Part shown: positions 15,391 through 43,300 of the stretch, piece by piece
How the letters are laid out: every line of letters begins with the position of its first letter
Position numbering within the stretch: position 1 is the stretch's first letter
NCBI GenBank assembly: GCA_904063045.1
Contig: CAJFCJ010000003.1
Coordinates: 682,001-746,000 of the forward strand
DNA length: 64,000 nt
Direction of reading: 5' to 3'
From: Dimorphilus gyrociliatus
Taxonomy: Eukaryota > Animalia > Annelida
Made by a program: the position numbers and the translations under genes
The notes under the pieces: generated by a model
What the model was told of the DNA's origin: nothing
Databases searched by the model: none
The model's input: only the letters and a program-made list of their open reading frames with translations

Positions 15391-15871
15391 ACTCTCTCTG
15401 ATCTCTCTGATCTCTCTGTTTTTCGTTAATTAGGGTATTTTAATTAGAAAAAGAAGTAACTAATATTCTATAATGGATAATTCAAAAATATATTGATAAA
15501 GAAGGTAATACGAAATAAGGCATTTACGCGTTAAAATCCCAATTATTTTTTCATAATAATTTTATCATTATCTTCATATTTTGTCCTTTTTTCTCTTATA
15601 AAATGGTACAGCATTATGTTTCCTATTAATAACAACTTCAATATCAACTAAAGTGCTCTAAACTCTTAATGATACTCTTATGAAGACTTAAATACTGCTG
15701 ATTCGCTTTTTACATTGATTAATAGTAGTTTCGTTCTCTAAAAATAATTGAAATGTTGTAGTAAAGTTGTATTGTTTTTTGAATTAGAAAGATATATATC
15801 ATTTTATAAAATCCTTTATGTTTTCTTTATAGTTATCTGACTATTCTTTATTAGTTATAACAGATGGAAAA

Positions 15872-16450
15872 ATGAACAGAAAACGTCTAAACGACGCGGA
15901 GATAGAGTCAGAACAGAAGAAACTGAAAAATAGTAATGACTCGAAAAAGACATTGCTGCAATATTTTCAACCATCCTCCAGACACTCTTCTTTATGCTCG
16001 GAATGTTCTCTAATTGTTGATGGTCCTGATTTAGCCGAATTGATAAGTTTAATAAACCACCATAAAGAAGAGCACTGCCTTTTTAAATACAATTGTAAAT
16101 TCTGCAATGAACAGACCAATGAATTCAACGAAATTCTCAGGCATGTAATGAATGAGCATAATATGCCAAATCATGCTTTTGAATGCACTTGCGGAAAACT
16201 ATTTAAGGGCCAGCATGATTGTCAAGGAAATGTAACAGAAGGCTATAAAACAATTTTGCAGTCGTATTCCAGTAGAGAAGACATTACATTTATAAACTCA
16301 GTGCCATCTGACGACGCCCTAATGGAGTTTTACAAAGGACATTGTAAACTGTGCAATATTAACTTTTGGACGTAAGCTTCTTTTAATTTTTATTTTAATC
16401 AAAAGAGAATAAAAACTATATAAAGGCTATTGATATTACAAATTGTACTT

Positions 16451-16486
<36 letters not shown>

Positions 16487-17548
16487 ATATTTATATCATC
16501 ATGCAACAGACAAGAAGAAACTGCTGACGAACTAAAAACCATTGTACAATTACATATAAGTTCGGTAAGTTCTGTGTTAAAAGATAATGTTTTATTTCTG
16601 TATCTTCAGTATTTAAAAAAAACTCCTTTTCTCCATCTTACTTTGTATTCTCTTAGAACATTTATACATATATATATATATGTACAGATCTTTAAATGCT
16701 ATGTTTTCTTCGTTTTATCTACCTGTAAGTTCATTTTATCTATATATATACTTTCTTTTTTCTTAAAAAAAGCTATTAAGTAAAAGAATGCGTAATTAAT
16801 TTCATTTTTCTTTTATAAATCTGATGAAAACTCGGATTTATATTTATACAACCAAACTTCTTTGCCTTACTCCTTTACTGTGAATATAGAACGTTGTTAA
16901 TAGTAAAAGGGTCTATCTTTTATAGATACATTTAAAACTTCTTTTCTTTTTATTCCTAACAGAAACATTCTCCTGTGGAAGACGCTTCGTCTCTTTATTT
17001 TATTCAGAAACTAAAGATGAAAGAACAGGACGGATTGCTGCATAATGGTAAAAATTCTTTCTTATTTTACTTCCACTTTTATATTTATATAGTATAGTAT
17101 AGTTAGTTTTTTATACCATCCAAACTCAACAAAAATCAAATAATAGGGGAATCTAATTCTTATGAGTGTTTATCAGTTTATTTTTTTTTCTTTTTTTCAA
17201 CGCCTTAGCAGCAGAGGAGACGAACAATAATGTTGAAAAATCTGCTTTACCTAACGATTTGAAAAGGCATTCTATATCCGGCCCAGTCAGAGGTTCTGAT
17301 TTACCTTTGTCCTTATTAAAGAAAGCTGTTGGAATCAAGTCCAAGTCGGAAATGGAAGACTGCAAATGGAAGAATGTCAGCCCAGAATTAACGAATGTAC
17401 TCTTGAAGTTCTTTGAAAAGTACGTTGTTTTGTTCTTTAGATAATAGATGATGACTGAGCTAGAAAAAGCTAAAGTAAAGACATTTGTTTCGATAGCCAA
17501 TCCACCAAAAAAGAGGCTTTATTCACGGCCTTTACTCTAATAGCAAAC

Positions 17549-17600
<52 letters not shown>

Positions 17601-20600
17601 GAGGGGGAGGGGGCAGGAGAAGGAGAGGATAGAAAAGATAGAAAATGATAGAGTAAGAGGAAATAAAAAAAATTTATCAAGGTATTCAAGTACATTTAGT
17701 GCTTTTCTTTTGTGTTTACCTGATATATTTGAAGTTATCATTTAATAATTAATAAGACTGAAAGACACACACTTCGTAATATCAACTATATATAGATGTA
17801 TACAAAATGTATATACTGTATTGTTTTATATAAGTACATGCCTGCCGTGTACACGTGTACGAATGTATCTATATAAGTGTTATAAAAGAAAAGAAGCTAT
17901 ATCATGTAGAGATATTTTAGAAAATACATAATGTCGTGGAAAAAGCATAAAGAGGAATTGTTTCTATTGTATTCAGCTGAAACAATGTGAATAATTTATA
18001 TTCTATAGTTATCTATAGAAATATATACAATTAAAATTTTGTACGATTCTTATTAATCGTTGATTTAACAATTGCTTTTTTAATTTATGACTTAATTCTT
18101 TTATTATTGTCTTATTAAGTCTTATATCATTTATTACCACAGAAATTCAACACAGGAAATACACTATTGTTTATTTTGCGGTTTTGGCGTTAGTGGTACT
18201 GCAATGGGTACCGTTCTTACTTCAATTTTAACTCGACATTTACATAGTATACATCAAGTTCCAAATTATTCTTGTAAACTTTGCGAATTTGTTACCAATG
18301 ATGGACGTTCCGCAATAAATGATCATTTATTGTCAAATCATAATTTTGAACGCCAGAGAACATTCCATTGCCGTTTTCCAGTTTGCGGCGCAAAGTTCAT
18401 TGAAAGGGCACAAGTTATGGATCACGTAATTATGCATAGTTGGCCACATGACGGACAGAGGTAACTCGATATTATAAATATTAATTATTATACATATTTT
18501 AACCTTTTTTATTGTATAGATTTAATGTTTACGACGTTACTGCTGAACTAAATGAATTTTGGATCGACAATTATGCAAGTAGTGTCACCGTACGGCCAAA
18601 TCATTGTTTTTCAAACGACGTGAATAAACGGTACTTGAAAGTTAAAAAATACTTCAATAATTTGATTTTATTATCTATGAAGTAACTGAATTTATATTTT
18701 TTCAGATGTATAACAGCTGCCTGCAAGCATTGCGATCTCATGTTAGTTATAGCGCCGTCTGACGACGAAACGGATCAATTCAAGGCAACTGAAATTGTTC
18801 ATCAAATTCTCAAGGAGCACCATTCGACAGTCCATCGAAGATTACAATTAATGTGCTGTAGATGCGGTCTAAGAGTTAGAGAATTAAATACGAGATTAGC
18901 TGAGGAACATAAAAGATTGTGTTCACCCTCCTCAAGAAGACGGTCGCTTTGTACTCATGGTAAAGGAGCAGCCTGTGCTGAATGGATTGATTTATCAGGT
19001 TCAATACAACATTACGACGTAAGTGTTCCGGGAACAGGAAGGTTGCAAAGAGCAGCTAGCGCTGAGCCGTTCATTATGAGCGAAGAAGAGACGACGGAGA
19101 GAAATAGGAGAAAACAAAAAAGGCCAAGACAATTTCGACCAGAGGAAAAGATGCGTTTTAAAGTTGAGCATGAAGAAATTTATAAAGTTGATGGATTAAC
19201 AGAAGAAGAATGGATGAAAAGATTAAAAAAAGCAGCGGTAGATAGGAGGAAAACTGTTAAAAAGAATATAGCGAATGAAAATGAACTTGGCAGTTCGTTA
19301 ATGAAAGATTATTGCGAAAATTCATCTCTAATTGGTCAATCTGTATATAGGTGTGATCTTTGTGGTTATTCAGCATCAGCCACGAATCAAACCCATCTAA
19401 TTGCTATATTAACGCGCCACCTACAGGATGTTCATAAGCTTATGAATTTTTCATGCGCGTTATGTAACGAAAGCAACGAAAAGAAAGAAATGATTATTCA
19501 TCACTTAATAATGAATCATTTAAAAAGACAAAGAAATATTTGCCCATTTACCAGCAAATGTGATGACATCTATCAGACATACGACGATTTCAGTAATCAC
19601 GTTTTGGGGCATGTACAAGCTATAAAAAGCATTATAAATTCACCTATTAAAGAGGCTGTTATCGATAACTATCCTGAATTTATTACGTGTGTTAGCAACA
19701 GTTTTGTTAAAAGTGAAATACTTGCGGAATGCGAGCAACTCTACTGTAAACTCTGCGACTTGAGTGTTTGTTGGATGAGAAGAGGTAATGAAGACCAACT
19801 GATAAACTTGGCTATTGACCAATTGGCAGGTCATATTGAAAGAGATCACCATAAAAAAAGATTTCGCTGCAGTGAATGCCACTTGCCGGTAACAAAATTA
19901 ACTGGAGCGACAATTAAAGAACATGAGGTTGTTTGTCCCGCCGGACCTAAAGCTAGATGGGTTAAATACGATCTTACGCATTATATACGTAAAGTACTCT
20001 CGAAGGATATTACTGATAATCATTCTGATGTGGAAGAGGATATTGAAACAGACAAATCAGGAGATCAATCCAAAAAGTTTGTAATTTATTAACATTCTTT
20101 TACCTTAATGTTTTCTCTATGCTTTCTGTTTTTTATATGCAAAATAACTTTCTATACAGCCAAGAAATACGTAAATTCTACTGTAAGGAGATGATAATAG
20201 AATGTCCAACACCATTAGCTCCTTGTCTATCGGTTGTTAGGGAAGAGGCTATTTGTAATCTATGCCAGAAAGGATATGAATACAAGGAAATAGCAGGGCA
20301 TTTATCCGCTGAGCACGTCATGAAACAATATTCTTGTAGATTCTGCTCTTATCAACAAGATAGTGTTAATGATGTTAGATCCCATCAATTAGCTAGACAC
20401 GGACCTTGTTATTGCCTTTGTGAGTTATGCCATATGGAATTCAGAAGGAAGGATGAACTTCAAAAGCATTTAAAAGTTGACCATAATACATTTTTAATGG
20501 ACTCTTTCAATTCGACTACAGTGTCACTTAATGGAAGAAGCAAAGTCAATAATCAACACGATTCTGCCTATCGATTAATTAATCAATTAGAATCGCCTCA

Positions 20601-21741
20601 ATTGGTCAAATGTTGTCCTAAGTGTTCCCTGGTTATAATATCTAAAAGCGTCGATATGCTTCAAATTTTTAAGGATCATTTACAAAAGAGTCATGGTATT
20701 AACCAGTTTCAGTGTATGTCATGCGATTTTAATTCTGCTACTGCAACGGAAGTTAGCAAACATTTTGAAAATAGCAAGAAATGTCATCATAAAACTGTAA
20801 TAGTTGCTGGAGATCACAAAAAGCTAATTAAAATCAATGATTATAATTCGATGCATTCATGTAAGAGATGCTGCTTTGTAATTTTATCCACAAATCACTT
20901 TGATCCAAGTCGATCCGGTTTTGAGCAGATGCCGCAAGAGTTATGGAAGCATATTCTTTCATCGCATCATTTCGGAGGTGATCCAACAGAGGCGGTGAAA
21001 CTAACATCTGTTGTTGATATTAAATCCTGCTCAATTTTAGCGAGAATTCCCGCATTAACAATGCAAAGTAAGAAGATATCAAAAGATGAAATTCACCCAA
21101 AAGAGAACAAGAAAAGAAAGAGAAAAAGAAACGAACTGAACGAAATTTCAACAAATAATCTTTTAGAATTAGAAAATTTGGGTTGTATATTCGAATGCGA
21201 TGATTGCGGTTTCCTTATAGCATCTTCTTCAACTACTACAAATTCTTTAATAGGACTAGCTACTAGGCACGTAACAGAACTTCATTTACCAAGACCTTAC
21301 GCTTGTGCAAAGTGTGGAGCAGCTTGGGAAAATAGAGAAGAAGTTGTTGAGCACGCTATGCACTCGCACAGATATAAAACGACTAACAATAACAACGACG
21401 AACTAATTCAAGATTTGGGCGTCGGAAGGTTAAAACAATTAACTAAATTAAAATTAAATGAAATTAAATGCGATTCTCCGAAGGTACTCATGAAATGTAC
21501 AAGATGCTGTTTATGCATTATAGCTTCTGATAAAATGGTTACTCAATCATTAAATTTACTAGAACATCATCTAATGAGAGGACATTTTATAAGAAAGTAT
21601 AAATGTACAGCTTGCGGATTCCAATCTAATACTTTAGACGGTCAAGACGTCTACGACCACAATCAATTATGCTCTATTGATAAATTGATTAAACAAGATT
21701 TTACTTCGAGAATAAATGTTAACGTTCTTCCCGAAATGTAA
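15872..21741 (+). CDS. Large multi-C2H2 zinc-finger protein; 8 exons: 15872-16371, 16510-16564, 16963-17047, 17209-17419, 18143-18460, 18520-18630, 18706-20076, 20160-21741; ~1410 aa
   Basis: All junctions are GT-AG and phase-consistent (4233 nt). Splicing completes an interrupted finger (CKLC..NFWT|QEETADELKTIVQLHISS|KH). Many CxxC...HxxxxH motifs and basic NLS-like runs (RRKQKRPR, KKRKRKR). A further upstream coding exon is not excluded. Confidence 0.85.
17550..17596. repeat. (AG)n microsatellite
   Basis: Read directly; in a zinc-finger gene intron. Confidence 0.95.
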
Positions 21742-24681: not shown

Positions 24682-27600
24682 ATGAAAGTAGCATGCATCA
24701 TCTTTCTCCTTCTCGCCTTAGCTATTGTTACTCAAAGCCGGAGGCAACGACGGCACTATTGGTCCAAAAGCCGATGCCTGGAGAAGACTTTAGAAGAGAG
24801 AGAGGAGTATGCCGACGTTGTTCTCGCCGCCACTGTCCGAAGAGTCCGTCGGATTGAACGCCACCTCGTGGCCACTGTTGTAATTAAGGGCATCTTTAAG
24901 GGAAGTCATTACCTAAACAATGTTCATGATCGAAGAAAAAAGATTTACAAGACGGGAGAAGGAAGGTACATAAGGATAAAGGGGCTCGGCAATCCAAAGA
25001 TTTGCGACAACATGGTTTATCCACGCGATACTAGGATCTTTTTGTTGAAATATGAAAAGAATGGAGATTTATTTCTTAACTCAAGTTTGGTAAGAATAAC
25101 ATTAAATAACATGGAAAGAACCGACGCCGCTGTCTCAAGTGAGTATAAACTTCAATAAGCTTCTATTGGTCTTTCTATAATTACGTAATAGTTTCTTATC
25201 TGTCAAAACTCTATTGCTATATTCTTATCTGAACGTAAATATTAACATAGCAATAATTTTGCGGTTGTTGAGAAAAAGCGTCGGTGTTCGAAGGCCTTTA
25301 CTAAAGAGTCTTTTGTACGGATATTTTATACCTGCATTGAAATCGCCCTGTTTCGAACGACTTTATTCAATGGTCATAATTATAGGCCTATAGCCTATAA
25401 CCGTGTTAAGGGTCTAGAGATTATTTAAGGGAAACCTATAAGTGCAGGGCAAAAGTTTTCGATGATATGAAGAGGTCTGAAAAGATTTTATAAGTACGGG
25501 ATAGCAAGAAACCGGAAATCTATAGGACTATGATTTCTATAAAATACCCTTGTAAAAGAACTAATAACAATTTCTAACGAGTGGCATTTTATACACTGCA
25601 TCTTCTATGCTCTCATTCGAACGATTTATTACGTAATCCTATAAGTTTGCTGACTTGGCCGACGAATGATTTAAACAAGATTAGAGTTGTGATATGCTCT
25701 TCATTCTTGTAATCCATGATCTCTGCTGTATTGGTTTTAATTAAAATTGTGTAAAAAAACTCTGTAGGTTGAGCCGGTAGTCCAATATAGGCTAAAAACA
25801 TTTCCTCAGTACATTTTCAAATATCCTGGTAACCCCAATAACTAACTAATAGGCTTAAATATGTTTCGTAGAGAGAGAGAGAGAGAGAGGGAGGGAGAGC
25901 GAGATTGATCGAGGGAAGATAGTAATTTTGTTTTATTTTTCTAGTTAACTTTTTATCATTAACTAAATATTTAAATATATTTCTATTTAAATAAAGCACC
26001 TCGTTTAACTGTTACAGTTTCTTTTAATAAAGAGAACAAGTATATTTATATAGAATGTATTATATATATCTAATATACTGTATATATATTGTTTACAACC
26101 TTACAAATTTTATAAGCAATTTTCTTTCTCTTAACCCTTCTTTTTCATTTTTTTTCTTTACGCACACGTATACGCACACCCTCTCTCCCACCCTCTCTTC
26201 CTCCCTCCTTCCTCCCTCTCTCTCTCTCGCTCTTTCTTTCCCTATTCGAATTCTGTCATTTTCTGTTACGTATCTTTAAGCTATAAAATATTTCTTTCAT
26301 TTACTTTTTATTTTGTAAATATTTTCTTAATATTTTCCTTTTATAGATTCTTTGACACATAAAATCTCTGCTGACCTCTTTTAAATTTGTTCAGGGGTGC
26401 TAAAGTAGGCCTAAATATATAAGATTTTCATATTTCCAGTTACTTTTTTGGGTCATAAAATATTTAAACATAAAAAATTTCCAAAAAAAGAGCATAAAGA
26501 GATAGAGGGAGAAAGAAAGAAAGAAAGAAAAAAAAAGAGAGAGAAAGAAAGAAAATAAGGATATGAATGAATGAATGAATGGGACACAAGATGTTTATAC
26601 ATACATTCGTACACACGCACGCACACACGCATACGTACGTACACACAAAGTATATTTATACATATGTATAAAAAGTGGAGAGACAAAGTATGTTATCTCT
26701 TATTATAGTTGAGCTTCTTTATTGTCCTAAGATAAGATTATTCCAGTAAAGTGGGAGAAACATTCGACAGAAGATCTTGATAGAATTTCCTGTCTAGAGA
26801 AAAAAAAATTGCCAAGAGAACCACGACTGTGTGCTTCAAGCATCAAATTTTTCGATTCATTTATTTCCGCTCGTTGACTGGTTGCCCAGAAAGCTAAGCA
26901 AAGCCGTTTGCGAATTATAGGAGGGAGGGAAAGAGGGAGGGATAGAGGGAGGGGTAGAAAGAGAGAGAAAAAAAAGAAGAAGAAAAAAGATAAGCCCTTC
27001 TAAAAAGCAGCGGAATTTTAATAAAGTTTAAATTAGATGTCAGTTGCTTTGTATAATACTTCATTTTTATCTCTTTTGTCCATCTTAAACTGACTTTGTT
27101 TGAACGATACCGAAAAGGGAAGATCTTGAAGATTACCAAGTTAGCACCCTCATTTTCAAAGTCAATAAAGTCGGTTTGTGAAACGTGATCAGCTAACAAA
27201 ATCATTTTCTTTTGTTCACAATTGTACACAAACTAATGGGGGAGAGGAAGCAAAGCATATGTCATTAGTATATCAACATTTTCTGGTGCCTAGAAATCCA
27301 ACTTCACCCATCTTTTAACCTTTTTCATTTAATCCAGAAAAAAATTACAAAGATTGAGGCTAAAATCATTTATTATACGAATACGTTGAATGTGTTTAAT
27401 TAGTTCTTAATCATTTTCCGACAGTTCCGGCTTATATTTCTGTTTAAACACGTTAAAATCCTTAATTAATGCAAAAGTAATAACGATATACAATATTCTT
27501 TAAAAGACAATTAATCTTTAACTTTTTTATTTATTAAGGCTCGATACTCGATATGAATTTTTTTTTTAAAAAAATCTCTTTGAACCAATCAACATTCTTA

Positions 27601-30600
27601 AGATAAGGAAATTGACAGCACAGAAGTTGTTGGAAGATTAATGACGAATGGATGATTTTTCGTATTTTAGGAATATTGTAATTAGTGGGCGTTAATTACT
27701 CGATTATTCGACCCTAAAATCGATTCGTAGTTATTTATAACATATATTAAATTACTTTCTAATGAACTTGTTGAAGTTCGACCCGAAATAAGTAAATTCC
27801 TTAAAACGTATATAACTATATATATATATAGATATATTTCCAATTAGAAAACGTATATATATGGTTAGAAATAACCTCAAACAAGTCATTAACAAGCCGA
27901 AAAACGGCTGTTAAACAACGGGGTGGCAAATATTTGCTGTTTTTTCCACACATATGCGTACAAGCGTATACATGCAAAGTATGCACGTATAGATGTATAG
28001 AAGTATAATATTTATATGCATATATTATAATATCAGAGCGTATATATTGCCTATAGTAGATTATATCAATCTGTGTAGTTAACTTTCGATAATGCAGAGG
28101 CGTTATAAATCATGAAAAATGTGTTTATATTAAAAAAATAGAGGGTTTTAGTGTCTTTTTCCATTTCGGTTAGGCAAAGTTAAAATATTAAAGATTTAAT
28201 AATCGAGAGAATTTAGCAGATTTCAGGGTTACAAAAGGGTTTAGTTTATCAGAGAGTTGATTGTATATATAAACTAATATATATATTTTGACTATGATAG
28301 TCAAAATATGTATAGTATGCATAGAGTAAAATTTTATAGAAATTGTATACATTTGTGATTAATCGTCTTGTACAGCACGTATTTATTATTATATTCAGTT
28401 TGCAGAGTACAGTATCTGTAGGCTATATAATATCTTGCGTAAAGTATGTGTTTAAATAAGAGCATAATTTATAGTATTATATACAATACTTGGAGAATAT
28501 GAACGTTTCTTTGCCTTTGATCCTATCGTAGTGACGTCGTTTTTTTAGACGGTCCGCTAATCTATAACGAGTTTAGGCGTATATTTCTTCGCCCGATTTC
28601 ACGCCAGTCTAACTGGTTTGAATCGAATAATTTTTTCCTTTCCTTTCTTATACGTTCTTTTCTTTTTCCTTTTTTATCTTATATATTATAAAGTAGAGAC
28701 TTTTTCTCTCTTATTTTTGAATGTGCTAAACGGTCCTTTCTTCTTTTTATAAGGTTTTATTTTTCATGATATTTTTTGAGTTTTGACGTTAAGCCTATAT
28801 ACATTAACCCTGGCCATCTGAATAAACAAAGGGTTGAGTTTATGGCCTAGTTTCTTTTACCTGGGTCCACTAACAGGTTGTCGAGAAATACAGTTGTTGC
28901 CATCTGTAGGCCGATATATATATACAGAATAATAGGGAAACTCCACCACTCCATTTGGAAGGATCCAAATATCTAAATAATAAAAGTCAATAAAAAATGC
29001 TAAAGAAATAGCCGTTGTACAAATAAAGTTGACATACTAAACATAATAATAATAATAATAATAATTCATTTAGAAATTGAATCTCCTCCATTCTATTAAG
29101 ATAAAAATGCGTAAATTGATGATGCAAATTTTCCACGTTTGTAGGCCTAATTGGTCAAGTAGTAGAAAACGAAGTACATTTAACAAAATTGATGAAGTGA
29201 GAAGAATTTAATTTATTATATTTTACCTTTTCGCCCAAGTTTACTTTATTCGCTAATAAAATTTTGTTTGCAGTTCTCCTTAAATAGAGAACGAAACTAC
29301 TTTTTCAATTATATTTTTATCCTTTCCGACTTTATCTATACATCTCTCTGTCTCTCTTTCTCTCTCTCTCTCATAATGTTTTTCTATTCTTTTCTTTTCC
29401 ACTTAACTTATGTCTAAAACGATCCGGCGGGAGGATATAAGAAAAAGATGGCAAGAAGATCTGTTTAAGGCCTATGTAAACCTCATCCCAGATCTGTTAT
29501 CAGCTTATTCGATATATTTGATTCTCGCTCCTCCCCAAATGGGACACAAATATGAGTCAAAGAGTAAAAAGATCTTTTATAAAATCTTCAATATCTTCTA
29601 CAACCAATTAAAGTCTAAATGGTCTATTAATTATTGTGCAAAATACGCAAATTATGGGGTGTCGGAGAATTATTAGTCATATCTATAGAGTCTTTTAATA
29701 TAAGATTACTATGTCTTTTGTTGATTGTGTGTAATTCGTTTTGTGAATTGAATAATTCCACCGTTTAAAATCGTTTGAGCGAAAAATAAGGAAATAGAGA
29801 AAGAAAGTATCGAAAATATTGATAATAATAATAATAATAGTATTAGCAATATTTTATAGTCTATCTATACGATTTGTATATAGGCTTAAGAATAAGTTGG
29901 TTTGTACAAACTTTTATGTAAATAGACAAACCGGGAATAAATAGATTAGTTTCTAATCAACTATTGTCATCTAACACTTTCAAACAAACGATGACCAAAT
30001 TGATACTGTTTAATCAAGTTATTTAAAGATTTTCCTTAATTGTTCTCTACTTAATGGTAAAGCTAACAGGTTATTAGATTAATAAATATTGATAATAGAT
30101 GGCGCAGGAAAAGTAATTAATTAATTATATAAATTATATAAGGAAAAGAAGAAAAGTCAAAAGGAAACATCTTCAGCAAATACTACAGTTTGTTTGATGA
30201 AAACGTCAGAAATATGCAAATCAAATAGGATAATATCTTCCTTTCAACGCTCTTTTTACTATGAAATTATGCAAATGTAAACGCTATCGAATCTTCGATA
30301 AGCATCATCGTTTATGTAAATTCCTATCGAATACTGTATACAAACAGAATAAAAATTAGTTAGAAGAAGAAAGAAGAGCGTGGAAAATCTCTTGGACGAA
30401 TTGCCGATATTTGTCATCAATAACTGAATGATTGATTTCTCGTTTTTTGTTTGGACAAGAGAAATTTTCCAGCCATTCGTTTATTTAAGATCGGATTAAG
30501 ACTTAATCGTTAGAGTATTTGTCCGTTAATCCGCTTTAATTCGGTCGACGTGCTAGTTTTCTAAAAGGGTACGCCAAAGTAGATTGTTTTCATTCTGATT

Positions 30601-33600
30601 GAGCCGGCACATATCGGTTCTCGGATCGATTCAAGTGATTGGTAATAGATGGCGCTTACGTTTCCTTTTTTTTTCCTGATGTGACGTTTGGGACTCGAGG
30701 GTATTTTGCTGTTGAATAAATTCTTGTTTGAGTATGTATTTTGCATGAATAATTCGTACAAATGGGCTCCCATGAACTGTTCATGAACTTTCACATCAGT
30801 GACTTTCCTGTATATCTTATTCTCTCTTTTTCTCTCTTCCTCTCTCCTAGCTCTCTTACTCTTTTCCTATTACGCTATCTCCTCAGCGCAAACTTAAAGG
30901 ACAAGAAAACAGAAAGAGAGTTTAAACATCCGCTTCCCTTTTTCTATAAGACAGAATACAATATTTATGCTATAAAAAATAGATTTCTCCATGATTCCTG
31001 TCAAGATAACAACCAGTTTATCCCTTATCAGAAAGATAAATATAAGTTTTATTCAGTGGCGCATACCAATCGCTATACTAATTATAAAATACTTGCGAAT
31101 ATTAGAGATATTCAATAGAGCAGTTGAATATTTTTTGATAAAATCTATGGATTAAATAAGAATTTCGTATGATACTATGAAAGATTGCTATTTAGTCTAT
31201 TTATAAGGAGAATTCCATAAAGTATTATCTACTCAAAGAAGCCTAAGAAAATAACTAGAAATGGACTCAAACTAAACTGATAGATATCGTATAAATAAAC
31301 CTCTTATTCTTCTCTTTCCTCTGAGGAGTAATTCTCTTTGACCTCAGCAAGTTTTATAAATTACATATATTTTATATTCGACTTGGTTTTTTCTTTTATG
31401 ATAAATGATTGTTGTCTTTAACGTGTCCCATGATGTATGGATTTATCAATGCATCTCTCCACGGAGCTCTCATCTCTATATCCCAAAAAAAAAGAAACGA
31501 AATAAATTACTTTTTTTTTCCATTCTATTTCAACAAGAAAGCCGTCTCTTTTCGACGCCTTTTTTTATGATTTCTTTTTAAATATTATGATTTTCATTTT
31601 GTTTATTCGTTGCATCGATTAGCATTATATATCTATATATATTTATGTATTAGCTTATTGAGAAAGTCCGCAAATAAATAGATATAGTAAAGTGAAAATA
31701 TACGAAAAGGGTATTCATAAAATTGTATTCCAACACCAAATAGCAAGTATTTATTCTGTAAACTTTTACACTGGACGAATATTTCTCATAACTATAAAAA
31801 GAAAAGGTTAAAGGAAAATAAAGATTTTAATTTATATTCAAGTAGATCGTCTCTCTTCTTCTTCTTGTTCTTTCTATATACTGTATATATATATACATAT
31901 ATGTATATACGTCTTCTATTGAATGCTTCAAGAATATTGTAAATGGAAGAGACGCCCCCTTTCTTTCTTACTAGCAACGCCATCTAGCTGTCCAAGAGAA
32001 AAAGTTTTTAATATATGGAATTTGTTTATATTTATTACAATAATGAAGAAGGGAATATTTAAATAGTGTGACAGAATGACGAATGCTTAAGGAAATATGT
32101 AATTATTCCGGATCGTTTTAATTGTTTCGAAACAGATCTGGACGGACGATCGAAAAAGATGAATGACGTCGTTAAAATTTTGACAATAGGTGTATTGTTA
32201 AGGGTTAGAAATGTGACCTTTTTAGATTTAGATAGTTTTGTTATATTGAATGCCGGAAGTATCCGTTTTTACAGTATAGAGTCGTTTGTCGGCGACTTTT
32301 GTAGAGATGGAAAGATAAGGATGAAAAAAGATAAACAACATATACTGTATTGAGAAAAGGTAACCTCTATACAAAGCTTTTGTCAATGGAAGTATCGTTA
32401 GTAATTATTGTTGAAAGATCAATTTAATTTTGCCCTTTTTTCCCTTTTTATATAATAAAAAATAAGGGTCAATTTATTTTTAGTTCAAGAATAAGGTATA
32501 AGAGAATAAAGATAAGAGATTACATAGACTACGAATAATACGTAGTCTATTAAAAGAAAAAAACTACAAAGGAGTATTCTTTATATAGTTAATTTTCGAA
32601 AACTGTAAAGAAGAAAAGGAGTAGCATGAACGAAGAGAGAGCAATTGGTTACATTCTTTTATACAAAGATACGTATCTGCTCTTTCCGTCCATATGTATA
32701 TATATATATATATATATTTACAGCATATTCTTCCTTATTCGTCTCTCTCTCTCTCTCTCTCTCTCTCGCTCTCTCTCTCTCTTATAAAATGATATAAAAC
32801 ACCTTCGTAGAAGTAATTCATGCTCATTAAGTCTTACCGTTTTCTATAATGAAATGATTTTATTCTAATTTAATGTTTAATCAATTATTTACGTAATAAT
32901 TAAACAAACTGAATGTTTTTAAACAACTTGACATTTTTTATTAAGGATTTCAATCAATAAAAAATACGAAAAACCATTGAATAAGAAGAAATAAGTGAAT
33001 AAAAAACGAAAGAAACAAGGCGTTACTCGTCAGACATTGACACATTTTTCTGATTAGGCAATCCGTATAAATTATGTAAATTAAATTGGATAGAAAAATC
33101 GCTTTTTTCCCCAGTCATTCGAAAAACAGCAATGCCTAAAATACATTCTCAATTACTAAATTCTAGTGTAAAGACTGATAGAAAATTAGTTTTTACATTA
33201 TTACTAACATTATTATGGTTAAGCGTTGCAGTTGGAATGTTATTATTTGCTACTCATTTTGCAGATACCGTTTATAAGCCGCGAAAGAGAATAGATATTT
33301 TCTCAAATGGTTTGTATATTTCCTGTCTTTCTCTTCTATCTCTTTTGAAACAAGAAGAGAATATTTTAATCTATTTTGTTGAATATATTTCATTATAACT
33401 TTTTGTGTTATCTCTTTATAGATCCATGTAGAGTCATAACCTGTCCGTATGGTAAAGAGTGTAGAAATATTAAAGGAAAGGACTACGTTTGCGAATGTCC
33501 CGTTTGCCCGTAAGTAAACATATTTTTATGCTACAATGGCTGAATCGACTAATTCTTTACCAACAAATAAACTTTGCAATAAGAGTACTACGCTACTGTA

Positions 33601-36600
33601 AAGTCCTTAAAATGAGACAAGTTGCAGTACTTTTGAATTATTCATAGATTATCCTATGAATACTTGTTCATCTAATAGTATCAAGAGCTTTTTGTTTGTT
33701 TATTTCATAATTGTAGAACGAAAAATTACTAGGAGAGAATGGAATATGAAATATTTTGTATTTCTTAAGTATTTCACATACAGATTGTACAAAGCTGGTT
33801 AATCTTGCTTAAGGGAAGTTAGACTTACACGGTAGACTCATTTTATTAATTGGTTCTCAATTAGCACTAATACGTATTCTGCTCCTTTCAAAATTACGCG
33901 TGTATACACTGGTCAACAAAAGAAATTTGTCCAGAAATATAGGCCTAGATTTATAGCTTATTAATTCATATCTTACTATTTCAGTATAATATTAAGAAAG
34001 CACTTGGTTTCTCTTATGAACAAGAGTAAAAAAATTTTGACGTGTAAGATCAACATCCCAGCATCTCTACCAAGGATCAAATAGCTATATTTATAAATGT
34101 CATGAATATATTACTTATTTTAAATGTCTGTAGTTTTCATAGATATACTTATCTTAGATCACAGATTTACACAGTCTAATAATCTAGTAAAATGGAATCT
34201 TTTATCTAAAAATGTTAGCTATAAACTGAGATTGTTAAAAGTACATCTCTTTCTTACTATAATCCATTTAAAATCACAAACCTATATCTAATCTTACCAA
34301 TATCAATTGAAATAATTAACATTAATTAATTGTAAAGTTTAAAACTAAATACTACTGCAATTGAAACAGCAAAGTGTTTTATCTAACAATATTTTTAATT
34401 AAATGGTTACAATCAATTCTTATTCTTTTTCTTAATAAATCTATTACAAAACTCCCTCTATCAACAACATCTAATATGGTAATTTAATAAAAGTTTTTAA
34501 CTTGTTTTTATAACAGATCTTCTTGGGGAAATAGAAAAGTTTGCGGAAGTAATGGGGTAACTTATTCTTCGCTATGCGAACTAAAGAGACATTCCTGCCG
34601 AGACAGTGTTCTTATAACTATTAGACATCACGGAAATTGTACGGAAGGTGAGTTAAGTTTCAATATTTCGAAAAAAATAGTTAGCATTAAAAACAACAGA
34701 TGGCCATACTATAGTTTCTCCTCTACAAAATAGAACATGTATGTATATACTACATATATATATATATATATATATATAGATAGATAGATAGATAGATAGA
34801 AAGATAGATATTTTATAAGGATTTGGGTATACCAAACAAATTAATTGGTGGCATTTTGGTTTAAATAGCCAATTAAAGAGTTGAGCTCTTTGGCCAGTTT
34901 GTTTTTTATTGAATATGAAGAATATAAACAAAGAGAGCAAATGAAATTGGAGAGAAAGAATAAATAGGAATATATGTAAGAAAAAGAAAGTAGAAATATT
35001 TATCTAAATCACGAGATAGTCACTTTAGCCAAAAGTAAAAAGCTTCTAACGCTAGAGGCTAATGAATTTCATGCAAAGAAAAGCAATGAGTACCAAATAA
35101 AACTTATGATATGTACTACTATCGTATACATGATAATGACGACGATATATATGGCAACTGATAGAAACCTAATTAATTTTCATTGAATATATTTACATAT
35201 ATATATAATGTTTTAAACATGCGAATATGAGAAACCGGCATTAAAGGAATGATATAGAAATTCAGAAACATTACCCTAAAATTAAATCAATATTGTTAAA
35301 CTTTTCATTTAACAATTACAATTTATCGTTTATGAATCCCTTAGGAATTTCTTAATCTGGAATACAAGTCAATAAAATAGAATATTTCGCTTGTTTTTTC
35401 CCTATTTCGTATCAATAATTAAATATTTGAATTAGCAATAAAGTACATACCAGTTTGTTATTAACTATTTAAATAGGTTAAAAAGCATAAAATGATAAAT
35501 GTATATACTGTACTATATACAAATATATATATATATATATAGTTATATATCTGTCTCATTCACTTTCTCTCTTTATCCGTCTTTCATTTATCTTTGTTTT
35601 TTTTAGAAAGATATGATTGTTTTGAGCTTGTAATTATTATTCTTAGAATTTCCATTCTATATCACGCCATTGAGTTTTAGGGAAGAAGAGAGGAGGAGTC
35701 GGTAACCTTTAGAAAAAAAAGAAATTAGGAAACATTTGCGTATCTGTTGCAAATTTTATTGAGTATTTTTCGAGTGTTGATAATGAAGAGGAAGAAAAGG
35801 GGGAGTTTGAAGAAGAATTGCTTTTTCCTTTGACCTACTCAAAGGAGACGGTCAATGAATGAGATTGATAAAAAAAGATGTATAAATCTCTGTTTCTGCT
35901 TTTCCTTTTTATTCCATCTTCTCCTAGAAAACGCATTTCTTTTTTCAATCATCAATTTCCTATATCGATCAATATTTGAAGAGAAACAAAAGAAAAATTT
36001 AATTAAGATTTAGGCTATGAAGCGTCTATTTAAGATTTTAAGGCACAATCTTATCCTATTCGATGAAAATCTAGTGTTGGATTATTTGTGTGAAAAAGAA
36101 GCCAACTTTCTTTAGGCGTCACTTATCGATTTCGGAGTGAGGCGTCTATTTCGGCAGGCGTCTCTCTACATAATTCAAACGACGTCTCCGTCTTTGTTAA
36201 TCAACTTAATGGCATCGGGTTTTTTTCACGTACATTTTTCGCTAAGGTGATTATCGGTCTAAAAGCTTCTTAGTGACCCTTGGGAAGATTATCTCATATT
36301 TTTTTAATATCTACATCAAAAAAATATTGTCACTAGATGGCGCAGTTATAGTAGACGTCTTTTTCAGTTTGGCGTGTGCCTTAGACATGTTAACCGTCCA
36401 GTCCGTCCTAATCTTGTTGATATCCATAAAGATTGTAAACAATTGCTATATGTATCCTCCAGACGTTAGAGATCCATGCAAAGGTGTCGTGTGTCCTCAC
36501 GGAGCTTATTGCGAGCCATCGTTAGACGGTATCAGTTCCAGATGTGTGTGCAGGAAAGAATGTTATTCTTTTGGCAATCATGTGGATTCATATGCCGTTT

Positions 36601-37958
36601 GTGGAAGTGACGGTAAAACATATAGCGATCTCTGTCATCTAGAGAAATATGCCTGCGATAATGTTCTCAATATTACGGTTAAATATAAAGGAGAATGCGG
36701 TAAGTGGATTTCTTAGTTCCATTTCGAACCTGAGGGAGAAAGGCAAAGTAGACGGGAAGAGGGGTATGTGAGAGAGCGGCAGAGAGCGAGAGGTGGAGAG
36801 AGGTAGAGTGGAATCGGGATCGTAGAAGAAAGTCGGCCACTGTCGATACCATAAACCACTTAATTTTTACTTACTTTTTCGCTTCCTCTTCAAATATTTA
36901 AATAAAACAGTAAAATTCTATCCATTAATTAAGAGAGTACCATTTTCTATCGTTCTCTTCGAATTACATCTAAGAAGAAGAAGAAGAAGAAGAGAAAAAA
37001 TGGAATGAATTAATTCTATATTAACTAGCTCCTTATTAATTTCTCCCTATTATATTAATACTACTAATAGTAGTAGTACTAACAATTACAGAAGCGGATT
37101 TCTTTATTATATAAACAATTAACTTCATATATCGGATATAAAGGCAATAAGGATATTAATTATTAAGACTTTCTTATAAAATCTTAATAAAAATGAAGGA
37201 AAGAGTTAATCATAAGATAGTGGAAATATAAAAAAGTCTATAGTCTTATTCTCTGTCATTTAATTTCTATTATGAAGACTTTCTCGGGAAAAATTCCGCT
37301 TTATAGGCTACCACTAAAAATCCTTTTTCTTTCCTTTATAGACAAGACGTCTTAGGCTCTCAAGCGTCCAATTTTGAACGTCTGAGTTGTTATTAGGTCT
37401 ATTTTACGATAATAATGTTCTCAATTGGGCATTGATAACATATAAAAACTAGAGTCTGACAAATCAGTAATTTTCTATAGGAGTTTTCTCTGTTGCGACG
37501 TTCCACTACATTCTATAAATAGAGTCCAAATACTGTATTTATATGCGAATCTAATTGACTACATACCCATATTATTACTTTCAAATGGCAGACATTTCGG
37601 TTTACAAGAAATTATTTAGTGAAAAAAAAAACGCCTATTTTGTTTTTTGACTATTTCAACAATTCTGTACTTAGGACTATATATGGGCACATGGTAGTAA
37701 AAGAAAGTGGGAAGTGGTGAAATGGGGTCATACAATGATGGAATGTTTGTCGTAAAACTATGTTTGTTAAGTGCATACGTCATAGGATAAATCTAATAAA
37801 ATTGATATTGTATTTCTACTGGTTAAGACCAAGAGGGGAAGAGAAAAGAATGATAAACATAGGCTTATTTTTTTCTTATTATTAAAGTTAGAAAAAATGA
37901 TAAGAGTCATATGATTTGGAAAATAAGTGAATGAAATAGGCAAGAATTTGTGTGTGTG

Positions 37959-37992
<34 letters not shown>

Positions 37993-40357
37993 ACACACAC
38001 ACACATAAACTCGAGAAAAGCTTAGAATTAGCTGTGGGAAAAAAGCGACCAGAACTGGAAAATATCTTTTAAGACAGATTGTAAATTATAAATTATAATA
38101 ATCTATTTTTAGATGAAAATATTCCTTAAAATGATTATCTTAGGGGATAATTTTGTCAGCATTTTTAACTTTTTTCTAGTTCTATGGCATTAAATTATTA
38201 AATTATTATGTTAAATGACTGTGTAATATAAACTCTTTGCGAAAGACAGCTCACAAAACACGCATACACACATTCTCTATCTACCTATCTATCTATCTAT
38301 CAGTATATATCCCCAGCAATCTATTTTTCTCTTTGCTTCCCTATGTTTACATATATAAATTATGCGATTCTAATTCTGCCGACTTTCAATTGAATTATGG
38401 TAACATGGCGTTGTTTTTCTTCAGGAGCCGGCTGAGTGTGTTTAATCAAATTTTTGCCGTAGTATTGTAATTAAGAAATCAGCGACCGCCAAAATTTTGC
38501 CCAGCAATTAAGCTTTATTAGATTTATACTATTAAATCCCATTTTACATATATCTATTTATAGTAATATATAAATCTATATAGAAATGAAACAAATTAAA
38601 AAAATACTAACTAGGTGGCGCATCATTATTATTTAGGTTTCTTTCTTCCAAATCGACTTTTCTCGAAAAAGGGATAGAAAAGCTTTGAAAATTGTAGGTC
38701 ATGTTAATGAAAGATAGAGAAGAGACATTTCCTTTTGATGGGGAATTCCGCTTCCTTATTCTGGATAAAATTCGTTAACTTTCCATTAAGGAATTTCATA
38801 GTCTGGAAGAAAAAATCTGAATGATCCTTGGCAATCATCCCTAAATCCTCCATAGATTCCCTTCAGTGTTGAATTTCTATATAAATAAAAACCAATGAAA
38901 TCTATAGTTATAATTAATTTAAAATCCTCTTTCATATAAAAAGAAAGTTCTCCCTTTTTTTAAAAGTTATTTTTAGAAAGTATTCTGTTAAGGAACAAAG
39001 GAAGAAATAAAAAGAATTTGGTCTGGTTAGAGCTAATAATTAGGACTACAAACCTAAATTTTGTCTGAAGAAAACTAGTGACAATTCAATTTTACGCCCG
39101 ACAGATCCATGCGAAGGAGTATTTTGTCCTGACCATTCTGTATGTCAACTGACAAAAGACAGACGAGGGGAATGTTTTTGTAATAGTAATTGTTCGCATC
39201 TACCGAAAAAATCTGTAAGTATAGTTTAAATTTCAAATACTTTATATTATAATTATGTTTTAAAAAACCTTTATTTGCTTTTTCCTTCTTTTCGCCTCAT
39301 TTTTTTAAATAACTCCGCCCCTTTCCTTTTTCCTTGTTAATAATAATCAACATATTCTAGACAAATAATAAATCGAATTTATCAATTAGGTAAGATTCTA
39401 TAGTCTGTTATTAAATGAAAATTCGATGTATTAGTGTAATTATTAAGGATTAAGTCGACCGAACTACTTTGCTAATCGAATCACGCTTATCGACCATATT
39501 GGGGAGAGCGTTGGGAATTTTTACTATAATCCAATACTATATACAGACAACTTTATATTTATATATAAAAGGCCTCTACCCTTCATCCCTACCCTTTATC
39601 CTTTTACTCTATCGTTCCTCACTTACATTAGAGGATCGAAAAAGGTTTTAAAAATCGAAACAACAAACATTCACAATATACTTTAATAATAATACAATGT
39701 TCTTTTTTCTTCTATCTATTTAGATATGCGGAACAGATGGTGTTACCTATTCAAATGAATGTTTCATGAAGTTTCAGTCTTGTAAAACTGGAAAGAATAT
39801 AAAAATATTTCAAAGGAAAAAATGCGACGATTGTAAGTTGAAATTTCTAATATATACTGTATATTAATTAGAGATGATTTAAACAAGCAATAATAGACAC
39901 CTCTTTGTCCCTCTTGTAAATCTAAATAAAATTATAGAAAGATGGTTAAATAAAAGAAATGTAATAGGCCAGAAACATCTGTAAAAATTCTTATGCCTAA
40001 CAAGAACTGATTAGATAAAACCGTATAAGGGTGAATGCATTACGAGTTGCAATTTTTTAGAGTGACAGTTGGTTGTTGACTTTGATCTATCCCAATGGAA
40101 TTTTACTCTAGTGTTTTCCTACCAAATAAATTCCTCTATATATTTGCATTTAAGAGAGAGAGGGGAAGTTCTCTATCTTTAAGCCTATCAAATACTTCCA
40201 ACGTCCATTGCATTTTCTCTTTATTTTAGGTTCGTGCTATGGATAGTATACTACATATAAGCAAAAGAGGGTTTCTAGTAGACTCTTATACAAGATTAAT
40301 AATTTTAATGGTTTATACCACTAGTCACTTAAGCGGATTGAGCAGAATAAAAAAGGA

Positions 40358-40394
<37 letters not shown>

Positions 40395-43300
40395 GAGAGA
40401 GAGAGGGAGAGAGAGAGAAAGAGAGACAGATAGATAGATAGACAGAGAGACAGATAGACATGTTTATTCTCCATTAGTAAGATACTTAATTGTTTAATTA
40501 AACATTCAAAACAAAGTTATCATTACTTGTCTTTGTCTTATTAGTGATACTTTTAGATATTTCAAAAATATCAATATATAAATTTTCATACCAGTTTATT
40601 CAAAGAAAAAAACCTAGTAAACATATATTGCTGGACAGTAACTAACACTTATTCTAAATAGACTTTTTATATGCATATGATATATTGTTCTTGACTACTT
40701 ATAAGTTATTTTATCTCTTCTTTAGTTTCTTATTAGAAAGTGTTCGCTTATATGACATTTCCATCCCAACCTCAATCCAATACATGTCTTGAAACGAGCG
40801 TTGTGGGGTCCATTTTCGTGAATAATTAATATTTTGACTTATAGTAATGGTATTTAAAAGTGTGATAGAGTTGATGAAGTTTTTAAAGAGAATTAAAGAG
40901 AAAGATTCCGATGCAGATACATAGAGAGGGAGAGAGAAATTTGTGTAACGTAAAGGGAAAGAGGAAACAAAATTAGTAGTAAAAGATAATACTTGGAAGG
41001 AGAAACGTGTCAATTACACGATTTCAGCAATTATTACCTTTCCCTAAAGTAGGCCAGCAACACTTATCACAGCAGAAATATACTCACTGTAGCGCAACAG
41101 ACCCTTTAATGCTAGCTTGAGGGAACGTTAAAATAAATGTATTTCTGATATTATCTATTTTTCCTTAAATAAGTTTGAGAATATATCTCAAAAAGAGGTT
41201 GGGAAACGTTTAAGAATGAATTATTCAAAGAAGCCTTTATCTAGCTAGTCAGAAGCGCTGACGTAAAGCCGAATATTGCAGTCATTTATCCAGATTAGTT
41301 CCTTCAGTTTAGTTCACTCTTTTTTCATTCCTCTCATCTTATTTTCTTACTATCCTGCTATATATCGGTCTTGTCTTTTTCTTTTTCTAACAAAAAACTT
41401 AATGGGCTCATTTCTAAAAAAGCAGCCAATCCAGATGTGCAAGTAAATGACGGAAGAGCAGTTGTTGATGGTATTCCCAATCACTATATCATTTATCAAA
41501 ATATATACTTGTTTTATCGATCAGCATCGAAAAAAACGTCACAAAAACACAATATTGAGATGAAAAATATTCGATCACGTGATTTACAGTAAATGTTTCG
41601 TTCACGAATCACTAATATCTTTACAATGTGAATAATTAAGGATTGCATATATATAAAAAAAGGTCTAATTCTAAACACTGCACGAAAATGTTCACCTCAT
41701 TTCCGCCTTTCTGTTTTATATCTGACTAAAAATTCTCTAAAGGGTTTTTTATTTTTCTTCAGTTCATCATCCTTGTTCCTCTTTGAACTGCAAGACACAC
41801 AGAGGAGAATATTGTATGCTCGACCCGATGAATCACTTTGAGCCGAAATGTGTTTGCCCTCCTCCTTGCCCAAAGATGATGAAACCAGTTTGTGGAACCG
41901 ACGGACGAAATTACGACTCACCCTGTCATTTAATAAGGCACGCCTGCAGGAAGGGTTTAGACCTGGCAGAGGCGTATAGTGGTCAATGTAACCCTGACAG
42001 TGCAGCCTGCCAAACAGTTAAATGTCCATATAACGGAATTTGTATATTGGAATATTCGGGAACCAAATGCGTCTGTCCAACCTGTACAAACGAAACTCGA
42101 TGGGTTTGCGGTTCGGACCATGTAGATTATAGAAATGAATGCCAATTGAAGAGATATAGTTGCCTAAATAGAAAAAACGTTCGAGTCGCAAATTTTGGGC
42201 GATGCGACAAATGTACTTTAGGCTTAAAAAAGTGTAAATTTGGTGCAATATGTCAAACCAGACAAGGAAAAGCAAAATGCATTTGTCCGCAAAATTGCCC
42301 AAATATTATAGCTCCTGTTTGCGGGTCTGATGGGTTTATTTACGACAACGAGTGCAAATTAACCGCCGAGGCTTGCCGACAGCAAAGTAATATTACAGTT
42401 TATTCACAAGGGACTCTAGGCTGCGGTAAGTATTACTAAAAAATATATATAGAAAAAAAACAAAGAGAATAGAATTTCTTTCTTGTCTAAATAGAGAAAA
42501 CTAAGAATGAGATCATGAATAATTGAATAATAATTGATAATTAATAGTTAATAAGATTTTAGTCTATATTGCTAATATTTATTTAATCTTTGATATTATT
42601 TAAAATTTCATTCCTATATTCTTTATCTTTATCTAATAATCCTTTTCCTTCTGTTTATCTTTTTTACTATCTACGCTTAACATAGCTTATAAAAAGTTAA
42701 CTTGGCGAACATTTGTGAGGAGGCATACTCGTAAAAGTCTGTTTTTCTCATAGTCAACAAAACAATACTACGGGCAATCACAACCACTTTCCATAATCTC
42801 TTTAGAAAGATGGTCCTAATGATTAATAATGACGGCTTATGATGAAAATAGGCTTATGTCATTTATAGGTTATTAATTGGAGAGAGGACAGCTTTAGAAG
42901 CTTTAGATTGATAAGAGAATAGAATTATTTACGTACAGAGAGATAGGCGACGCTTTTAAAAACAATAGAATAAGGACCATCTATCTAAAACGAATGTGAT
43001 ATGGCATGATAGATAGTTTTTAAAAGGAAAAAGCAACAACGACTTTACAAATCATTCACGTCGTTTCATAAAAACAAATAAGCCTATTCACTAAGTATTT
43101 AAAACTCAATTTGTAAAAGGAAATTTTTATAAGAGAACTCTATAGAGACAAACGAAAAACATTATGCATATCGTGATGAATACTCTATTAAATTTCCTTC
43201 TCCCATCTTAACGGCACAAATTAGATTCGAACAGCACGTAAAAGTCTTTTTATAAAAGCCAGCAATCGCAACCTACCTACCACAAACTGCAATTCGATCG

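Follow-up and report, generated by a model that had tools for sequence, protein, structure and literature searches.

In vertebrates, the membrane-bound form of agrin is considered to be the neuronal, brain-type one. In the mouse gene, 8 kb separate the LN exons from a single downstream SN exon, which has its own 5' untranslated region (UTR) and is followed after 0.4 kb by the first common exon; the two N-termini are exchanged by promoter choice, and the SN exon is skipped in LN transcripts (Burgess et al. 2000, PMC2189804). Vertebrate transmembrane (TM) agrin is also the subject of Neumann et al. (2001), as cited in PMC1939731 and PMC2874008. In this work the agrin gene of the marine annelid Dimorphilus gyrociliatus was analysed with respect to a comparable element. 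The DNA under study, referred to here as the window, is a stretch of 64,000 nucleotides (nt) that corresponds to positions 682001-746000 of contig CAJFCJ010000003.1 in assembly GCA_904063045.1. Within it, positions 33132-33309 are proposed to be an alternative first exon of agrin coding for a type II membrane anchor, a reading to which we assign a probability of roughly 0.55.

Two agrin N-termini have so far been treated as a vertebrate feature (PMC2874008, PMC1939731, PMC8006230). For AGR-1 of C. elegans, 5' rapid amplification of cDNA ends yielded one N-terminus only, with a signal peptide, no NtA domain and no TM form (Hrus et al. 2007, PMC1939731), and in a survey of invertebrate agrins two N-termini are depicted solely for vertebrates (Banyai et al. 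2010, PMC2874008). The initial annotation of the window, which was made from the sequence alone, knew of no description of TM-agrin in an invertebrate. Likewise, none outside vertebrates was found in the literature on invertebrate, C. elegans, annelid and Dimorphilus agrin or on transmembrane agrin in invertebrates, database isoform predictions being outside the scope of this survey.

The annelid gene resembles the described invertebrate agrins in its follistatin repeats and its laminin-EGF, EGF and LamG domains (PMC1939731, PMC2874008), and an NtA domain is present as in the agrins of Trichoplax, sea urchin and Ciona. Unlike the C. elegans protein with its single N-terminus, annelid agrin would have two N-termini, perhaps three. 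The candidate exon follows the NtA exon at a distance of about 8 kb and closely precedes the first common follistatin exon, as does the single exon of vertebrate TM/SN-agrin; this position, for which the initial annotation had already put forward a match with the alternative first exon of vertebrate AGRN, agrees with the mouse LN/SN layout (PMC2189804). In the vertebrate form a short N-terminal tail and one hydrophobic segment replace the signal peptide and the NtA domain, and in the proposed annelid form they would do so as well. The vertebrate forms are switched by promoter choice, and the same would apply to the annelid forms. In contrast to the mouse SN exon, the annelid exon also contributes its 3' 45 nt to the NtA form, where they are used internally. 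Further, the annelid candidate differs from vertebrate TM-agrin in that it belongs to the protostome lineage and is proposed on the basis of conservation; similarity to the vertebrate exon in sequence is not expected.

The agrin gene and its recovered transcript

The gene was found on the + strand at 24.7 to 49.3 kb of the window. Pfam analysis of the exon open reading frames (ORFs) identified the NtA domain in the exon at 24682-25138 (PF03146, E 8e-22) and, in later exons, Kazal_2 (1.6e-29, three copies in one exon) along with further Kazal/follistatin repeats, EGF_laminin (9e-12), EGF (6e-17) and Laminin_G (1.7e-56, in three stretches). Given this set of domains, and given that the exons from NtA to follistatin domain 2 (FS2) are joined in RNA, the gene is a true agrin, as had been claimed from the first inspection.

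RNA evidence came from one public run, a coral-tank metatranscriptome kept as contigs (0.13 share of words). A 371-nt RNA contig joins 33265-33309, 33422-33509 and 34517-34647 with no or one mismatch per piece and at least 99% identity to the window. The contig extends 97 nt further on the 5' side, and the last 30 nt of this extension have their only match at 25109-25138, where the NtA exon ends; on the 3' side, after position 34647, the contig continues with the first ten bases from 36463 (36463-36472). The contig contains the following junctions: (i) 25138^33265; (ii) 33309^33422; (iii) 33509^34517; (iv) 34647^36463. The acceptor joined to the NtA exon is the internal one at tttgcag/ATACC, with AG at 33263-64. 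It follows that NtA-agrin contains 33265-33309 as a real 45-nt internal exon, and that the intron preceding it spans 25139-33264. A 33-nt RNA match at 32859-32891 with three mismatches was rejected as a low-complexity chance match.

These junctions alter part of the initial annotation. The 33309^33422 junction that it had proposed for verification was recovered, and donor 33310 is used in spliced RNA. The placement of the candidate exon inside the NtA intron stands for 33132-33264, but 33265-33309 is an internal exon of the NtA transcript according to the RNA, and the model in which NtA is spliced directly to 33422 is wrong for the recovered transcript, in which 25138 is joined to 33265.

In the gene table of the assembly, a single 109-amino-acid (109-aa) product extends across 32387-40716 (8.3 kb, L003), a region in which at least four agrin exons are joined by RNA. 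The agrin locus thus seems to be fragmented or unannotated in the table of GCA_904063045.1, and the candidate first exon itself appears to be unannotated. The exon model obtained from RNA corrects this apparently poorly represented locus of the public gene table.

The candidate first exon and its conservation

The ORF that starts with ATG at 33132 and extends to 33309 comprises 59 codons plus one base (178 nt, phase 1). Its peptide consists of MPKIHSQLLNSSVKTDRK, a 23-residue stretch (L19-T41) devoid of charged or strongly polar residues, and HFADTVYKPRKRIDIFSN. The N-terminal tail is made up of 18 polar residues ending in KTDRK, and the linker that follows the hydrophobic stretch is basic. 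For the best 19-residue window of the stretch, the mean Kyte-Doolittle value is 2.42 and the summed energy on the Hessa scale is -2.7 kcal/mol. Donors 33310 and 25139 are both in phase 1; both predicted spliced products are in frame through the first two follistatin domains (FS1 and FS2), and they are identical from TVYKPRKR… onwards. The features initially described, namely a 59-codon ATG-initiated exon with a polar tail ending in KTDRK, a hydrophobic helix (of 23 residues) and a polar linker, are thus present, and sequence and in-frame splicing agree with the assertion that its donor shares the phase of the NtA donor and fits the follistatin exon 112 bp downstream.

Since T-rich intron ends give hydrophobic translations, a chance ORF is a serious rival as long as the sequence alone is considered. 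In 10.7 kb of neighbouring intron, four ATG-initiated ORFs of at least 59 codons were counted on the + strand and five on the - strand, none of which had a hydrophobic stretch of this kind. A comparable stretch was present in 6 of the 37 + strand ORFs of at least 59 codons in the whole window. The ORF by itself is weak evidence, and the case rests on the comparison with a relative.

When read through past donor 33310, the ORF codes for 88 aa in total, with 29 codons beyond the donor. Exact look-ups gave no record for this 88-aa ORF or for the adjacent kinase ORF. A protein search with the 88-aa ORF returned a single match, a 61-aa ORF of 82% identity present on two Logan contigs of another species. 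Comparison was made with L001, a 6.7-kb Logan contig of a related species that is colinear with 31.6-38.2 kb of the window. In a global alignment, the intron background is about 30-60% identical and true exons are 70-89% identical, with a few prominent islands (for individual segments around the candidate exon, see Table 1). L001 retains the ATG, the internal acceptor and the donor, as well as a TGA stop located in frame 27 codons before the ATG.

Codons 1-44, i.e., the part upstream of the internal acceptor, differ from L001 by 19 nucleotide changes and no indels. Nine codons carry synonymous changes only, including two first-position changes in leucine codons, and six carry replacements (S/G, V/K, K/T, V/I twice, H/R). 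With the Nei-Gojobori method (NG86), the proportions of synonymous (pS) and nonsynonymous (pN) differences are 0.37 and 0.078, the synonymous divergence (dS) is 0.51, and the ratio of nonsynonymous to synonymous divergence (dN/dS) is 0.16. The pN is similar to that of the neighbouring true exons, which have values of 0.016-0.17 at a dS of 0.65 or more. When the same substitutions were placed at random, a mean of 12.9 replacements was obtained and 76% of the trials contained a stop; outcomes with no stop and a replacement count as low as the observed one had a frequency of 5e-5 (20,000 trials) to 2e-4 (5,000 trials). The 45-nt exon has a dN/dS of 0.08 with dS saturated, and exon 33422-33509 shows coding-type conservation as well (permutation P<0.0002). 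Control islands at 32058-32319, 33012-33131, 36080-36335 and 37340-37470 contain 1-13 stops per frame, every frame being hit, and they have 0.44-0.78 amino-acid changes per nucleotide change as compared to 0.32 in codons 1-44. The comparison of the two species thus points to purifying selection on the frame upstream of the internal acceptor, beginning at a kept ATG. The absence of a conserved hydrophobic ORF in relatives, which had been named as an outcome contradicting the proposal, was not observed: the ORF is kept in L001.

The block preceding the ATG contains TATAAAT at 33065-33071, which is fully conserved in L001 and located 61 nt before the ATG. The in-frame TGA is at 33051-53, and the only upstream ATG belongs to one minimal upstream ORF (ATG-TAA at 33074). 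In the 78 nt between the in-frame stop and the ATG (33054-33131), none of the four changed codons is changed synonymously, and the frame is shifted by one homopolymer indel and regained by another. Set against the coding part, this difference is only suggestive (Fisher P 0.09); the coding-type pattern begins at the ATG.

Hybrid first/internal exons have reportedly been described transcriptome-wide in mammals by Fiszbein and colleagues. In such exons an internal 3' splice site serves transcripts initiated upstream, and the exon becomes the first one if transcription begins within it or immediately in front of it. Internal use of the annelid exon is documented by RNA (25138^33265), and conservation argues for its use as a first exon. 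In the reading favoured here, transcripts from the NtA promoter splice the NtA exon to the acceptor at 33264/33265 and keep the last 45 nt, the step seen in RNA. A second promoter would be located in the conserved block 33012-33131, with transcription starting just upstream of ATG 33132, and 33132-33264 would be translated in the transcripts that it gives rise to. In this RNA the whole exon would be retained because the internal acceptor has no donor partner, and the constitutive donor 33310 would join it in frame to FS1. The product would lack NtA and carry the 18-residue basic tail and the 23-residue hydrophobic segment, most likely as an uncleaved signal anchor, so that the follistatin, EGF and LamG domains would be outside the cell in type II topology. 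Promoter choice alone would thus switch between basal-lamina-bound and cell-surface-bound agrin. With a constrained frame led by an ATG, a kept stop and TATA motif upstream and a spliced donor downstream, a hybrid first/internal exon is the simplest account. That the first exon is real, be its hydrophobic segment an anchor or a cleaved signal peptide, is considered probable.

Table 1. Features of the agrin locus discussed in the text, with their identity to the related contig L001.
Feature	Position	Strand	Evidence and remarks	Identity to L001
Signal peptide and NtA (laminin-binding), first exon of secreted form	24682..25138	+	457 nt; donor GT 25139, phase 1	
Sequence preceding the conserved block	32900..33011			45%
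Promoter-like / 5'UTR block before ATG	33012..33131	+	Conservation with L001; putative promoter	90%
Candidate part specific to the alternative first exon: ATG, 18-residue N-terminal tail, 23-residue helix, HFA	33132..33264	+	ORF, hydrophobicity, comparison with L001	86%
45-nt exon, common to both forms (…TVYKPRKRIDIFSN)	33265..33309	+	RNA contig; acceptor AG 33263-64, donor GT 33310	73%
112-nt intron, GT..AG	33310..33421	+	Skipped in RNA contig; acceptor AG 33420-21	32%; about 65 nt long in L001
First common exon, N-terminal EGF-like half of follistatin domain 1	33422..33509	+	RNA contig; coding-type conservation	
Second common exon, Kazal half of FS1	34517..34647	+	RNA contig, joint 33509 to 34517	
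Third common exon, FS2	36463..36699	+	Loose ends of RNA contigs 2 and 3; dN/dS 0.03 versus L001	

Alternative explanations of the conserved frame

Several observations weigh against a membrane-anchored alternative start. The comparison comprises one relative, one pairwise alignment and 19 substitutions, and as L001 was found by means of the ORF itself, ascertainment is biased towards an intact frame; if an open frame is taken as given, the synonymous excess still yields a P of about 2e-4. When 1.84 billion representatives were searched exhaustively with a profile, the relative already found was the only genuine match, and the exon turned up in no other protein, long agrin models included. In a metagenome scan with the two-species profile, none of 114 pattern matches was confirmed. 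Of the secreted-versus-membrane switch set out in the initial annotation, the agrin identity, the donor, the junction, the conserved coding start and the position have held up, but no transcript starting at the candidate exon was seen among the contigs of the one metatranscriptome run. Positions 33132-33264 are not covered by RNA in this run, and they are spliced out as intron in the sole transcript recovered. This absence means little, since it derives from one low-depth contig of one coral-tank metatranscriptome.

One alternative is a non-coding role of the region: that 33012-33264 is a conserved non-coding element, for example an intronic enhancer or an element regulating splicing of the 45-nt exon, with the frame as a by-product of a T-rich intron, is the only reading favoured by the RNA seen. 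Further, 33132-33264 has an intron-like composition (GC 27%, T 40%, as compared to a GC content of 40-43% in true exons) and doubles as the 3' end of the intron in NtA transcripts; it includes a real acceptor's polypyrimidine tract together with the branch-point-like TTACTAAC. Branch-point and polypyrimidine sequence alone translates into hydrophobic residues, and hydrophobic translations are also obtained from the T-rich sequence before other agrin acceptors. Several other intronic islands in agrin are conserved equally or better without being coding; those at 32058-32319 (93%), 36080-36462 (about 90%) and 37340-37470 lack a frame. However, a non-coding element does not predict nine purely synonymous codons as against six replacements in the absence of any indel, nor an ATG that is kept right after a kept in-frame stop, and the control islands have none of these properties. 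Moreover, no conservation whatever is seen in the sequence before the next acceptor (33421). A purely non-coding role of the region is thus regarded as quite unlikely.

A further question is whether the first exon, if real, encodes an anchor or a cleaved signal peptide, in which case its product would be a secreted agrin that lacks NtA and is not bound to laminin. The comparative coding evidence applies equally to both, and an N-terminal hydrophobic segment that follows a basic n-region is equally signal-peptide-like. A small-residue motif that could be a signal-peptidase site (A33-V34-G35) is kept in both species, and the charges of the 15 flanking residues, +2 on both sides and more positive on the C-terminal side in L001, do not clearly favour type II topology. 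On the other hand, an uncharged stretch of 23 residues is long for a cleaved peptide, the hydrophobic core of the gene's own signal peptide in the NtA exon having 15; the candidate site is within the hydrophobic stretch and has no polar c-region, and a site after residue 44 would have H or R at -3. Besides its length, the basic residues directly before the segment speak for an anchor. The NSS sequon in the tail is NSG in L001, and this lack of conservation fits a cytoplasmic tail; conserved N-glycosylation of the tail was accordingly dropped as a candidate feature, as was furin-type cleavage at KPRKR, which is KPRKT in L001. Cleavage of the segment is considered possible but unlikely.

Two other readings concern the extent of the exon. 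If acceptors upstream of the ATG and in frame with it were used (exon starts 33058, 33115 or 33130), a longer internal exon would place the hydrophobic stretch after NtA and before FS1. In-frame AGs that could be cryptic acceptors are present at 33056-57, where AG is conserved, and at 33113-14, both preceded by 13 pyrimidines in 20 positions, but the latter is TG in L001, and no use of either was seen in the RNA contigs of the one run; the one transcript recovered uses 33265. The changes in 33054-33131 are of a non-coding kind, with compensating homopolymer indels, and a helix placed after a cleaved signal peptide and NtA would implausibly give the follistatin and LamG domains, which are rich in disulfides, a cytosolic location. 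We therefore regard this longer exon as very improbable. Even less credence is given to an independent gene for a small membrane protein of 88 aa that is nested in the agrin intron and read through the donor. The ORF does run uninterrupted from ATG to stop in both species, but conservation ends exactly at donor 33310, the read-through tails of 29 and 2 codons (88 versus 61 aa) are wholly different, and the donor is demonstrably spliced.

Further conserved islands, neighbouring sequence and significance

Two islands that precede the candidate first exon by about 1 kb, at 32058-32319 (93% identity) and 32450-32550 (about 87%), have stops in all frames, no Rfam match and a CRE-like (cAMP response element-like) TGACGTCG within; they could be an enhancer for an internal promoter. 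The core of the island at 37340-37470 (37350-37450) is 92-98% identical to L001 and also has stops in all frames. Rfam analysis of 25.1-38.5 kb yielded only a sub-threshold match to mir-297 at 26572-26636 on the - strand (30.9 bits versus a gathering threshold of 90), which is located in a TG/CA-rich repeat and almost certainly due to chance.

The region 36080-36462, about 380 nt before the FS2 acceptor, is 90-100% identical to L001 and contains repeated AGGCGTC / GACGTC motifs. Within it, a signal-peptide-like reading frame (MLTVQSVLILLISIK…) begins with an ATG at 36387 and continues in frame across the acceptor into FS2, and it is at this ATG that the 109-aa product of the gene table (P0003) starts. 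In comparison with L001 this frame has only three substitutions in 25 codons, too few to test for coding constraint, and the region may be a third promoter or merely a conserved intronic element.

A search for more relatives with the FS2 ORF found only the 109-aa product of the window itself. Neighbours in the ESM Atlas were uninformative and consisted only of unnamed small bacterial membrane proteins at 0.83. A 923-aa tandem-repeat translation (P0002) that scored with a profile E of 2.7e-12 was discarded as an artefact made up of nine weak matches to query residues 39-58; this case illustrates how a short query may obtain an inflated HMMER score from a repeat protein. The sequence immediately before agrin (15833-21738, same strand) contains several very long open frames, of 180, 468 and 564 aa, that are rich in C2H2-like Cys/His pairs and are probably parts of one large zinc-finger gene.

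While an alternative-promoter switch of the agrin N-terminus is already known in vertebrates, the annelid case appears to be new and has an unusual hybrid-exon layout. Rather speculatively, the switch between secreted and membrane-bound agrin from two promoters, with the order and spacing of the exons as in mouse, might have come from the bilaterian ancestor instead of being a vertebrate invention; the annelid would then have a compact form of it, in which the TM exon doubles as a mini-exon and possibly a third, signal-peptide start precedes follistatin domain 2. If the proposed exon is borne out, the conserved annelid TM start would move the origin of the switch to early bilaterians or be an instance of notable convergence, and D. 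gyrociliatus would be a small, tractable animal in which cell-bound and matrix-bound agrin could be studied outside the vertebrate neuromuscular junction.

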